A stretch of 63,871 nt of DNA, filler included, from Reticulomyxa filosa (lineage: Eukaryota > Protista > Foraminifera): assembly GCA_000512085.1 (NCBI GenBank). It is 30 parts of 30 records of this genome, joined end to end, with 100 filler letters (N's around TTAATTAATTAA, not from the genome) between each part and the next. Parts side by side here need not be neighbours in the genome. Positions count along the whole stretch, not along the records: positions 17,749 to 19,909 come from ASPP01038932.1; 29 more parts are not named here. The stretch is one strand, 5' to 3'. The notes below the pieces were generated by a model. The model was not told the DNA's origin, did not search any database, and saw only the letters and a program-made list of their open reading frames with translations. This document shows, one piece after another, positions 17,649 through 21,759 of this stretch. The position numbers and the translations under genes were made by a program. Numbering within the stretch: position 1 is the stretch's first letter; every line of letters starts with the position of its first letter.

Positions 17649-18264
17649 NNNNNNNNNNNNNNNNNNNNNNNNNNNNNNNNNNNNNNNNNNNNTTAATTAA
17701 TTAANNNNNNNNNNNNNNNNNNNNNNNNNNNNNNNNNNNNNNNNNNNNTTTCATGCACGGGACCAGAATTGATGATACGTCAAAAAAAAAAATGTTTTTT
17801 TTACGAATGCATAACTTGAAAAACGGGAGCGAAACTTGTTTTTTGATGATGTAGAAAAAATTTTTGTGCATTACTCAAACTTTTGTGCACTAGACAAATT
17901 TTTGTGCATTAGCCACGTTTCTGACGTAGAAATATCACAACATTTTTTTTTTGTTAGGTTAAACTTTGACACAGGCCAAAAAAGTTTAAAAGTTTACGAA
18001 TTTTTTTAATAATATCTTCGACGTACAAATCGGCTTTCAAAAAAGCTAGGAGCTCAAAGGCCGTCAAATAAAATTAATTTTTTTTGAAACGTTTCCCCCC
18101 CTTGGTACTGTCCATACGCAAAAAAAAACAAACAAGGCGAAAAAGCCGCCAAATACTCATACCAAAATGTGGTTTTAGTTTTTTTTAAAAAATTAATTAA
18201 GTCCGTAGTGCTATCTACTGTTCACTTGCACGGACACGTTTTCCCTTCCAAGCGCACAAATGCA

Positions 18265-19405
18265 TCAAATCCAGGCCTCGAAGACGCCATTGATGGTGAC
18301 AATGAGGAAGATGAGTTCAGCAAAGTTGACAGAATATCTCAGGAAGCCTTTGAAAACATAAATGTAAATGAAAGTGTATAAAAGTAAAATAAATGTATGT
18401 ATTAAAAAAAATACATAATACCTCCAATTCCGCCAAAACATTTAACAAATTGAGCATCTCTTGTGAGCGATCAGTAACAAATTATAGTTTACATCCATAA
18501 TTTTTATATTGTGAAGCAAACCATTCAAGAAATTGATCTTATTGAACAATTTCCCAAATAAGACCAGTATCTTTAGATGTAATATAAATTTCTTTTTTTT
18601 GATGATTTATATTCTTAAAAGATCAAGATTTTCTCAAATAATACAAGTTTGTAAAGCACCCATTTCCATAGCATGAATAATATCACGATAATCAAAACAA
18701 TATTTATTAGTATCTTTAGCAATTTCTTGCATAAAATCCATTAATTTAACATTAGCTAAAGCATCTTTACTTTAATTCAATAGATTGATTAAAAATGATT
18801 TATTTAATAGTGATATTTTAGATTGTAGATTAAAATCTATTGTTATTAAAATTGTTGATACTTCTTATGGTGGTGAAAATGGTTTTAAAATTAGCACTAC
18901 CAGCTAATACTAAACCTTTTATATTAGGTAAATCATTTATTATAAAATGTTGTGTACATAATTATGTCTTTTTTCCATACGTAATCTAGCAAAATGTACT
19001 GTAAATTTTTGTAATATATTATATATACTACCAGATAATGTACATCAATTATTATAAAATCAAATATATCATCACTTTATAATAATTCATTTAATGGTTC
19101 TACATGAAATTTATTATAACATAAATATAATGATGTATTTATAGATTTAAATGGTTCAAAATGTATTCACATTTTTTTTTTTCTTTTCCATTATCTGTTG
19201 ATAATCTATTTACTCTAGATTTTATATTTGAAGCTGTTCCATGTTCATCTTGTATCATTTTTTGTATTCTTGATATTTGATCTTTTGGTGGTATTACTAA
19301 TGATATCATAGAAGTTCCATTACCACGTGATTGTGATAAGTGTTTAATTAAAGTTTTTATTTTCCATTGTTCAACAAGTGAAGCATCTATTGGTTTTTTT
19401 GACAT
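18265..19405 (-). pseudogene. eRF1: Eukaryotic peptide chain release factor 1 pseudogene with two micro-inversions and several deletions
   Basis: [61 protein letters not shown], (inverted) [28 protein letters not shown], intron 18348-18421, then GFLRY. The GGQ loop is deleted and there are several TAA/TGA stops. Confidence 0.95.
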
Positions 19406-21759
19406 TTTTTTAAAAAAAATTAAAAAGTATTTTTTTTTTGAAACAGAGGAATCCCCAGTATTACATCCAATACTATCCCATATTAATATATTTTTTTTAA
19501 TAAAAGTATTTTTTAAAAAAATTAAAAAATAATAATCAAAAAGAATCAACAAAATTTTTATCTTCATTTTTCTTGTAAACTATCCAGCTGTTTGTAGAGA
19601 AAGATACCTTGAGATATTATTTCATTTTCATCCAAATTTTATTCAAATTTTAACAAGTTTTTTATCCATTCACTTGAGTGTAGGGCAAGATCCTATAAAT
19701 ATCTGAACCTTGAAGGAACCCAACTAACTTCACTTACTCTTTTGTTTTTATTTTCTTCTTTTTTTACCGAATACTGGTTTACTGAGTAAAACCCTTTTCG
19801 TATTACATTTAGTATAACCTCTTCCAGCTGACGTCCCACATGAGTTCAAATTATAAAATAATATTTTCATTATGTGAGAAAATGTTGTTTAATTCAATTA
19901 AAAAAAAAANNNNNNNNNNNNNNNNNNNNNNNNNNNNNNNNNNNNNNNNNNNNTTAATTAATTAANNNNNNNNNNNNNNNNNNNNNNNNNNNNNNNNNNN
20001 NNNNNNNNNTTAATAAACAATAACACAATAACGAAAATCTTTCTATTTTTTTTTTTTCAGCGTATCTGAATAGTTTGACTTAGATTATTATGGAGGAATC
20101 AATCAATTATTTTTGTTGATTGTAATATGATATAAAATAAAAATCTTGTCACGTATTTTGAACAGTCAACAAATAAAAAGGCAATGATAGACCAGAAACG
20201 ATCATTTTTGATTAGTTTGTCGTTTCCTAGTTTGAGTGTGATTTCATCTTTAAACAAAGAATTTTGACTTATAATACATTTAAACACACGTTTGTAGTTG
20301 AAAAAAAAGGTTCCCTCGTTCATATGGAAATTCTCCTGTAATTAGTAAGGCATTGACTACAATGATGTACAAATTTATTTTATTTTGATTTGTATGAAAT
20401 ATAAAATGAATTATTTTTCCTCTAAAAAATACAAATTAAAAATCGAGGAGTAATTTATGGTCACCTAATTACGAGCTATTCAAAAAACCACAAACGATGT
20501 TTTTATTTAAGGTTATGTCTTTTAAATTTTTTTGAAATTATTGATATAAAGCATTGATAAGTTTGAAAGAAAAAGTTCAAATATAGGTCCTTTCAATAAA
20601 ATCGGTAAACTTCTATCAGGCCAATCTGAGGACATAGAAGCAGCACAAAATCTCTACAATTACTCTGCAGTCGAATTGTTTTATAACGTCGCAAAGAAAA
20701 GAAACACTAAAAGGTAAAGAAATACTAAAGTGTGTTACTCTGTTTAAAAGAAGGAATTAAAATTACTTGTTGTGCAAAAAAAATGTGTACGTTATTGGAT
20801 TTACTATTGTTCAGAGCAAAAACTATACAAATCATTTGGTCTCTGATACGGTGCTGCGTATATTGATTTACAATAAAAAAAATTAACATTTGTATTTCGA
20901 AGGAAGAATTTATCATTTGTTTTGTTTTTAAAAGACAATACATTTTAAGAAAAAAAAAAATCAAGTGAAACAACTAAAGCTCAATTTTTTTAATAATACG
21001 TATAATTTAATGATTTTTTTTTAGCTCATGTGCAAATATAAATTTGTTGAATTTCATTAATGAACAGTTTTTTTTTAGCTAGCTTTTTAATCTAAAAAAA
21101 CTCTTTGTGCTTCCCATCACAAAACCGTGAGAAATAGTAGAGACAAATGACAATCCCAAAATTATAACGATTTGGCTACGTGTTCTTTCTCCTAAAACTC
21201 AAGACAATAACTTTTCTTGGTTTTTTTGTATCACATTGCCACTGTGGTTTTCTTTGGTTGGTTTTCATTTTTCTTGTAAGAAGCTGATGACTCAGTAAAT
21301 ACAGNNNNNNNNNNNNNNNNNNNNNNNNNNNNNNNNNNNNNNNNNNNNTTAATTAATTAANNNNNNNNNNNNNNNNNNNNNNNNNNNNNNNNNNNNNNNN
21401 NNNNTTTTTTTTTTTTTTTAGAAAGATGAAGAGATCACTTTCTCTAACGTGTGGAAATTTTCGTCAAGAATTCGATACAATTTCCTATGTTCCTCATCCC
21501 CCACCCGGTGATTACACCAATTCAATCCAAAGAGCTTAAGTCAGCAACATCAGTGCTTAAGTTCCATTGGCATGAAATGTGGTTGCTCACACATTCTCAG
21601 GACAATCTACGTCCATTTTGCTGTGAATATGAACGCTCGACACCTGCAGCAATTATGTGAAGCATTTAACAATATGCAAAAGGCGCTGATGGAGATAAGA
21701 CGATATCCCAGATGTCAAATTTATCGACGAAATCAAGAAACGAAAACAACAAGGAGTTT

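Follow-up and report, generated by a model that had tools for sequence, protein, structure and literature searches.

Two micro-inversions bounded by short inverted repeats in a decaying eRF1 pseudogene of the foraminiferan Reticulomyxa filosa

Short inversions that leave a DNA segment in place have been described in primates, both as pure micro-inversions flanked by inverted repeats (Potapova, Kondrashov & Mirkin 2022, PMC8755829) and as in-place inversions attributed to template switching (PMC5453318). In primates, substitutions outnumber definite micro-inversions by about five orders of magnitude (PMC8755829), and candidate template-switch events number 4,778 per 14.51 million base differences, i.e., ~3.3e-4 per difference (PMC5453318). 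The '1-3-2-4' type, which merely inverts a fragment, accounts for 45% of the high-confidence primate events (PMC5453318). For micro-inversions with very short repeats, microhomology-mediated break-induced replication (MMBIR) has been proposed, and it is given as a caveat that a repeat of only 3 bp offers little support for the polymerase to jump twice (PMC8755829). Inverted segments with short repeats at their edges are also found in the scrambled micronuclear genes of spirotrich ciliates, which carry inverted MDSs and pointers.

The window analyzed here is a stretch of 63,871 nucleotides (filler included) in which parts of 30 records of the Reticulomyxa filosa genome assembly are joined end to end, and all positions count along it. 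Minus-strand translation of the part from ASPP01038932.1 (17749-19909) revealed eRF1 sequence scattered across three frames. Based on comparisons with related copies, this region contains the following features:

17749..19909: presumably a complete contig, 2,161 bp, R. filosa, GCA_000512085.1, with ~89% DNA identity to ASPP01021398.1, non-coding flank included
18265..19408, minus strand: unprocessed eRF1 pseudogene, ATG at 19408-19406 and TGA at 18267-18265
18348..18421, minus strand: retained intron, 74 nt vs. 94 nt in ASPP01021398.1 (1269-1362), at the same site, after the GGIGG codons
17753..18264, minus strand: co-duplicated 3' UTR and downstream flank, homologous to ASPP01021398.1 1446-1952
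17858..17911: 19-nt tandem repeat in the flank, 2.8 copies vs. one in ASPP01021398.1, an insertion
19409..19909: AT-rich upstream region, without convincing homology to the upstream region of ASPP01004452.1

An ORF at 19408-19139 covers the N-terminal part. It matches eRF1_1 in Pfam and eRF1 structures in PDB (E ~1e-25), keeps the NIKS stop-codon recognition motif as TASNIKS, and has R. filosa ETO32143.1 as its nearest relative (82%). When separate fragments of the pseudogene were searched against Pfam, eRF1_1 (E 5e-12) and eRF1_3 (E 5e-6) were found on the minus strand and eRF1_2 (E ~1e-5) on the opposite strand. Using a close full-length eRF1 (P0167) as a tblastn query, residues 14–441 were covered piecewise. 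In NCBI, UniRef and EukProt, the public gene model on the contig is only a 142-aa fragment (P0001; phmmer search), which is a warning about annotation at this locus. A full three-domain eRF1 is encoded by R. filosa RFI_24941 (P0166), and searching with domain 3 brought up no additional eRF1 fragments in R. filosa. A search for RNA genes in 17749-19909 returned no Rfam match and no tRNA.

Four sequences served for comparison, among them the contigs that encode ETO32143.1 and RFI_24941. ASPP01021398.1 (hereafter, L002) carries an intact eRF1 paralogue, whose two exons (20-1268 and 1363-1445) are separated by a GT..AG intron (1269-1362); this contig starts 19 nt 5' of its ATG. ASPP01004452.1 (hereafter, L001), from the same assembly (GCA_000512085.1), carries another eRF1 copy, and two intronless eRF1 transcripts (L003 and L004) were used as outgroups.

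The pseudogene was compared to L002 using blastn. The locus aligned on the minus strand in two blocks (17753-19198 to L002 1952-338, and 19199-19386 to L002 244-57), in which exactly two plus-strand matches were nested. These matches and the repeats at their boundaries are:

18789..18888, plus strand: micro-inversion 1, spanning at most 100 nt and at least 18795-18882, at the end of eRF1 domain 2
18789-18794 (TTAAAA) and 18883-18888 (TTTTAA): 6-bp inverted repeat bounding micro-inversion 1
18277..18315, plus strand: micro-inversion 2, spanning at most 39 nt and at least 18280-18312, in the acidic C-terminal tail
18277-18279 (CTC) and 18313-18315 (GAG): 3-bp inverted repeat bounding micro-inversion 2

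Micro-inversion 1 matches L002 729-828 on the plus strand with 89% identity and L001 7861-7942 with 92.7% identity, and 89/100 of its positions are identical to L002 when it is flipped vs. 38/100 when it is not. Micro-inversion 2 aligns to L002 1395-1433 in plus orientation (84.6%, E 5.5e-6), with 33/39 identical positions when flipped vs. 18/39 unflipped, and its flipped reading agrees with the C-terminus of the related eRF1 proteins P0167 and P0168. Protein-level searches agree, given that a plus-strand ORF (18785-18907) matches Pfam eRF1_2 (E 9.6e-6) between minus-strand ORFs that match eRF1_1 and eRF1_3, and tblastn with P0167 recovered the same opposite-strand match nested within the gene. 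With both segments flipped, the locus forms a colinear alignment with L002 from just 5' of the ATG to L002 1952, including the intron. All four inversion junctions then keep the frame, with 0 bases gained or lost. As sequence features, both inversions are certain to be pure, in place and in frame. Their exact coordinates, the 3–6 bp range of their inverted repeats and the recovery of the frame on flipping are as described in an earlier note on this DNA.

To assess the boundary repeats, we used random in-place inversions of the same size in these sequences, among which a repeat of at least 6 bp arose with P ~0.006–0.009 and a repeat of at least 3 bp with P ~0.04–0.10. Overall, the boundary inverted repeats are moderately beyond chance, and the 3-bp case is marginally so. 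The orientation is standard in L002, L001, L003, and L004, showing that the two inversions are derived in the pseudogene copy (18265-19408). The inverted 100-nt segment diverges from L002 by ~11%, like its flanks, and has 8 derived states in common with L001. Because it carries these shared derived states, the segment is native to the copy and was not a chimeric import from another paralogue. Copy-specific substitutions did not cluster near the breakpoints and, if anything, lay farther away. Given that substitutions are not in excess there, the breakpoints give no positive sign of error-prone synthesis, which counts against a template-switch or MMBIR origin. An 11-mer opposite-strand search for additional small template switches in the copy returned only palindromes and one 12-nt quasi-palindrome (18612-18623), which is accounted for by a single G-to-A change.

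The remaining lesions of the copy, given relative to L002 and all on the minus strand, are:

TGA at 19169-19167 (for Ser) and 18636-18634 (for Trp), TAA at 19079-19077 (for Glu), 18541-18539 (for Gln) and 18484-18482 (for Glu), minus strand: five nonsense codons in place of sense codons
19181-19182 (+2, A in an A-run), 18773 (+1, A) and 18460|18459 (-1), minus strand: small frameshifts
19044|19043 (19 nt) and 18956|18955 (22 nt), minus strand: frameshifting deletions, microhomology 0–2 bp
18610-18600, minus strand: composite frameshift deletion (-5, +1, -12; net 16), microhomology 0–2 bp
19388..19391, minus strand: 18-nt in-frame deletion (4+14) in the variable N-terminal tail
19198..19199, minus strand: junction of a 93-nt in-frame deletion in domain 1 (L002 245-337), without microhomology
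18993..18997, minus strand: junction of a 42-nt in-frame deletion (L002 557-601) that removed the GGQ catalytic region
18745|18744 (21 nt) and 18570|18569 (36 nt), minus strand: further in-frame deletions, microhomology 0–2 bp

In total, there are six frameshifts (+2, -19, -22, +1, net -16, and -1) in addition to the in-frame deletions (18, 93, 42, 21, and 36 nt). Even after both flips, the copy is dead: the GGQ region is deleted and the five nonsense codons and six frameshifts are left. A variant genetic code was ruled out as the cause of the stops, because the codons they displaced specify different amino acids (Ser, Glu, Trp, and Gln). It had also been suggested that the locus carries short deletions, some of them at direct microhomologies. 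The deletions are there (16–93 nt), but they do not appear to have been guided by microhomology: direct microhomology at the deletion junctions was 0, 1, 4, 0, 2, 1, and 0 bp relative to L002, a mean of 1.14 bp that is not above chance (null 0.82 bp; P = 0.25). Only one deletion has a clear direct repeat, which is the 5-bp CAGTA at the 42/43-nt deletion when L001 is used as the ancestor proxy.

Identity of the copy to L002 is similar in exon 1 (0.89), the intron (0.877), exon 2 (0.88), and the 3' flank (0.891), and reaches 0.937 in the first 115 nt of the 3' flank. Because identity stays uniform through the retained intron and ~500 nt of 3' flank, the copy arose by duplication of DNA (unprocessed) rather than as a retrocopy. 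As judged from this comparison, L002 and the pseudogene are old paralogues, diverged by ~11% throughout, including the intron and flank. To place the copies relative to each other, we built a codon alignment of five sequences (the flipped pseudogene, L001, L002, and the outgroups L003 and L004), in which the many derived synonymous changes common to the pseudogene and L001 identify these two as sister copies. Their shared differences from L002 fall 6/0/30 at codon positions 1/2/3 (P = 8e-10), which demonstrates strong purifying selection on the shared branch. Changes found only in the pseudogene are distributed as expected under neutrality (15/10/10; chi-square P = 0.49), and those found only in L001 are likewise uniform (5/6/4). 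Given a constrained shared branch and uniform private branches, there was once a second functional eRF1 lineage, which duplicated before decay set in in both daughter copies. L001, too, is a pseudogene, with frameshifts, NIKS changed to NIIS, an altered GGQ region, and a truncation after approximately L002 position 910. Its deletions differ from those in 18265-19408, and there is no inversion at the counterpart of 18789-18888. There are 35 substitutions on the pseudogene branch vs. 15 on that of L001 (2.3x; P = 0.007), a difference that fits the decay scenario set out below less well.

To survey the genome for similar events, L001, L002 and eight more R. filosa contigs (L005–L012), amounting to ~105 kb, were compared all vs. 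all together with 17749-19909 (~107 kb in total), and 119 paralogous alignments were scanned for in-place reverse-complement segments with a reverse-only control. The scan found no in-place inversions beyond the two known ones in ~107 kb, at a power of only 35–45% for old events, as obtained with implanted inversions. The other candidates were only 14–15 nt long and were equally frequent in the reverse-only control. About 4.8 kb of the surveyed alignment is unique non-genic or pseudogene sequence, and at the rate of the pseudogene and this power, ~5 detections would be expected. The intact eRF1 gene adjoins a member of a WD40 family with >120 R. filosa paralogues, of which a single pair exceeds 78% protein identity; with only one such pair, the family is poor as pseudogene material. 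We also compared the rate at the locus with that in primates. The two inversions occurred among ~170 pairwise differences, where primate rates predict 0.06 or 0.003 events (P ~0.0016 or 6e-6), a comparison that is biased because the eRF1 locus was picked for its inversions. Two events per ~170 differences is nevertheless far above primate rates, and background mutation may be an incomplete account. Overall, the survey argues weakly against a uniformly high genome-wide rate and is compatible with a rate well above that of primates.

Taken together, these results make it probable that the locus is a dead, unprocessed eRF1 copy that is decaying by deletions and by micro-inversions of the template-switch or MMBIR type. 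The duplication took in the coding sequence, the intron, and at least ~500 nt of 3' flank. The lineage of the pseudogene and L001 was at first under purifying selection, after which both copies drifted neutrally, and the nonsense codons, the small frameshifts, the 16–93 nt deletions, and the two inversions were gained during this neutral phase. Each inversion probably arose on its own, through a mistake of replication or repair at a short inverted repeat: either the polymerase jumped to the other strand and returned (the four-point '1-3-2-4' template switch), or a break was repaired by MMBIR. The caveat on 3-bp repeats counts against this for micro-inversion 2. Two pure, in-place inversions bounded by 3–6 bp inverted repeats fit template switching or microhomology-mediated repair, in line with the earlier proposal that such junctions are the signature of template switching or microhomology-mediated end joining. 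For the deletions, end joining or slippage that needed little or no microhomology is the probable origin. With no selection on the copy, the rearrangements would persist and nothing would act on them.

If, by the same mechanism, R. filosa as an organism accumulated short in-place inversions and deletions unusually fast wherever its DNA is non-functional or duplicated, this would explain why a single 1.1-kb pseudogene with ~170 differences holds two events when 0.06 or 0.003 are expected at primate rates. It would also agree with the ~8 deletions of at least 16 nt plus small indels per ~63 private CDS substitutions in the pseudogene, and with the ~6 indels per 15 substitutions in L001, where the deletions are independent of those in the pseudogene. 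The 119 alignments (~107 kb), however, contain no further events where ~5 are expected, the sister pseudogene L001 lacks inversions, and the ascertainment bias is strong, given that the locus was flagged through its inversions. We therefore regard such a rate as unlikely, and it is similarly doubtful that inversions in R. filosa, and perhaps in foraminifera generally, occur at a rate 1–2 orders of magnitude above that of primates with medium-sized deletions similarly frequent. The unusually active process that the earlier note had put forward is thus not borne out by the survey (power ~35–45%), which recovered only the two known events, or by L001, which has none. If all or most of the rearrangements instead stem from one complex local event, for example serial template switching in break-induced replication or the repair of several breaks when the gene was duplicated or later, this would account for the concentration of ~10 structural changes within 1.1 kb (the 500 nt of flank have small indels and one tandem-repeat change), the lack of anything comparable at the other sampled loci, and the substitution excess over L001 (35 vs. 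15). Segment order is fully kept, however, with no templated insertions or duplications, deletion microhomology is at chance level, and substitutions are unclustered at the breakpoints. Moreover, L001 has its own deletions of a similar kind, suggesting gradual, ongoing loss, and a single event is quite improbable.

An origin of the inversions as library, sequencing, or assembly artefacts has to be considered because the R. filosa draft assembly is in a great many pieces (50,809 scaffolds, N50 3.6 kb; PMC13746701). This is very unlikely given that each inversion would need two exactly complementary junctions with no base lost or gained. The 3–6 bp repeats are far shorter than an assembly word or a read and so would leave no ambiguity of orientation, and the inverted DNA copies no assembled paralogue (89% identity to L002, 92.7% to L001) and carries its own lineage markers. 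The least probable explanation, with hardly any chance of being correct, is programmed rearrangement, under which the locus would be a germline-type scrambled gene whose segments are restored via pointer repeats, as happens in spirotrich ciliates. As this explanation would predict, the segment edges coincide with short repeats and flipping restores the frame locally, but five stops and six frameshifts remain and GGQ is still missing after the flips, the substitutions are neutral (15/10/10), and the junctions lack IES-like spacer DNA. No gene is intact except the paralogue, which has a flank of its own and is 11% diverged. These observations favour decay over programmed unscrambling, in agreement with what had been concluded from the nonsense mutations. 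They also speak against the idea that the organism holds both rearranged and unrearranged versions of its genome, because the unrearranged paralogues are ~11% diverged everywhere, with intron and flank included. A special gene-scrambling system is not established by these data, which comprise known mutation types in a foraminiferan pseudogene.

Although the locus does not reveal a new biological system, it provides two large, pure micro-inversions that are fully polarised, with an intact paralogue, a sister pseudogene, and two outgroups all at hand. Because rhizarian genomes are barely explored, the case is useful for models of template-switch mutation. If the rate is truly elevated, it would offer new insight into the fidelity of replication and repair in foraminifera. 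Pseudogenes in R. filosa would then be 'scrambled' as well as eroded, making them a natural system for template-switch/MMBIR mutagenesis, and the process might contribute to the fragmented, repeat-rich assembly of this species.

Among the known systems, the two inversions resemble the definite microinversions between human and chimpanzee (PMC8755829), in which a segment is replaced in place by its reverse complement, the inner edges of short inverted repeats form the inversion boundaries (repeats of 3–8 nt are common there), and template switching or MMBIR is the proposed origin. The segments described here (39 and 100 nt) differ from those events (17–33 nt) in length, a difference that counts against the explanation preferred here. 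Primate template-switch events typically involve tens of bases or fewer (PMC5453318). Frequencies differ as well, with two events in one 1.1-kb foraminiferan pseudogene compared to ~1e-5 of the substitution rate for primate microinversions (PMC8755829), and two per ~170 differences (after ascertainment) compared to ~3.3e-4 per base difference for primate template-switch candidates (PMC5453318). Inverted segments with short repeats at their edges are shared with the scrambled micronuclear genes of spirotrich ciliates; unlike in those genes, there are no intervening eliminated sequences, no restorable ORF, and no sequence-identical unscrambled version, and the copy shows neutral decay throughout. 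In its retained intron and flank, its nonsense and frameshift lesions, and its even distribution of substitutions across codon positions, the copy is like other unprocessed, deletion-biased pseudogenes. As in these, deletions far exceed insertions in the former coding region, with no difference in kind, and its many medium-sized deletions per substitution are reminiscent of genomes prone to deletion, for instance that of Drosophila.

A second eRF1 pseudogene, independent of the window copy, lies on R. filosa contig L001 (ASPP01004452.1; L001:7159-7975). It contains frameshifts, a NIKS to NIIS change, an altered GGQ region and private deletions of 3, 14, 30 and about 37 nt, and is truncated inside domain 2/3; this copy is not inverted. 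Over roughly the first 790 columns of the alignment, private substitutions number 35 in the window copy compared to 15 in its L001 sister (binomial P=0.007), and both branches look neutral despite this imbalance. Gene conversion of L001 by the intact paralogue on contig L002 (ASPP01021398.1) is one possible explanation, and a locally higher mutation rate is another.

Base composition was compared between the two pseudogenes (window 18265-19408 and L001:7171-7960) and the intact paralogue (L002:20-1445). Coding GC is 35% in L002, whereas it is 25-26% in both pseudogenes, and 101 of the 129 differences between the window copy and L002 pair a G/C in L002 with an A/T in the window copy. When polarised, the changes shared by the pseudogene lineage run from GC to AT, whereas those in the L002 lineage are mostly AT-to-GC. 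The 3' flank common to the window copy and L002 does not show the same AT shift as the coding sequence. This pattern suggests that the two eRF1 paralogue lineages were under differing codon-usage or biased-conversion regimes prior to inactivation. Repeat features were noted in the duplicated 3' flank:

Window 17858-17911: 19-nt tandem unit, 2.8 copies (single copy at the homologous L002 site).
Window 17775-17845: counterpart of an imperfect inverted repeat-like sequence at the end of the duplicated flank in L002 (1885-1945 and 2065-2135); the contig of the window copy ends inside this sequence.

The 19-nt repeat is a small tandem expansion within the flank, and the sequence resembling an inverted repeat may be a repeat that marks the duplication or assembly boundary.

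In the intact eRF1 of R. filosa (P0166), the stop-codon recognition motif (L002:190-210) reads TASHIKS, with CAC (His) at codon 66, whereas the window pseudogene, both intronless outgroup transcripts (L003 and L004) and eRF1 generally have TASNIKS. No intact eRF1 copy other than that on L002 was found in the assembly, which is roughly one-third complete. TASHIKS could be a genuine variant of the motif or result from a sequencing error; it could also indicate that the eRF1 copy actually expressed falls outside this assembly.

Other duplicated genes were found on L002 and eight further R. filosa contigs (L005-L012):

L002:4959-6176 and L005-L012: members of the WD40-repeat family.
L007:6331-7127: degraded Peptidase_C14 (metacaspase-like) copy, about 71-73% identical to L010:4786-5888.

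The L007 copy corresponds to the 3' portion of the L010 Peptidase_C14 gene plus sequence downstream of it and is a further unprocessed pseudogene fragment, in which no micro-inversion was detected. The WD40-repeat family of R. filosa is very large, with at least 120 paralogues in the annotation, some of them under the names NACHT/WD40 or F-box/WD40, and includes several truncated fragments (e.g., L007:5036-5810, L010:4587-4776). Its members share 73-88% DNA identity across 1-1.5 kb, whereas protein identity is only about 52-66%, a pattern suggestive of fast non-synonymous change, as is likewise the case in NLR-like WD40 families.
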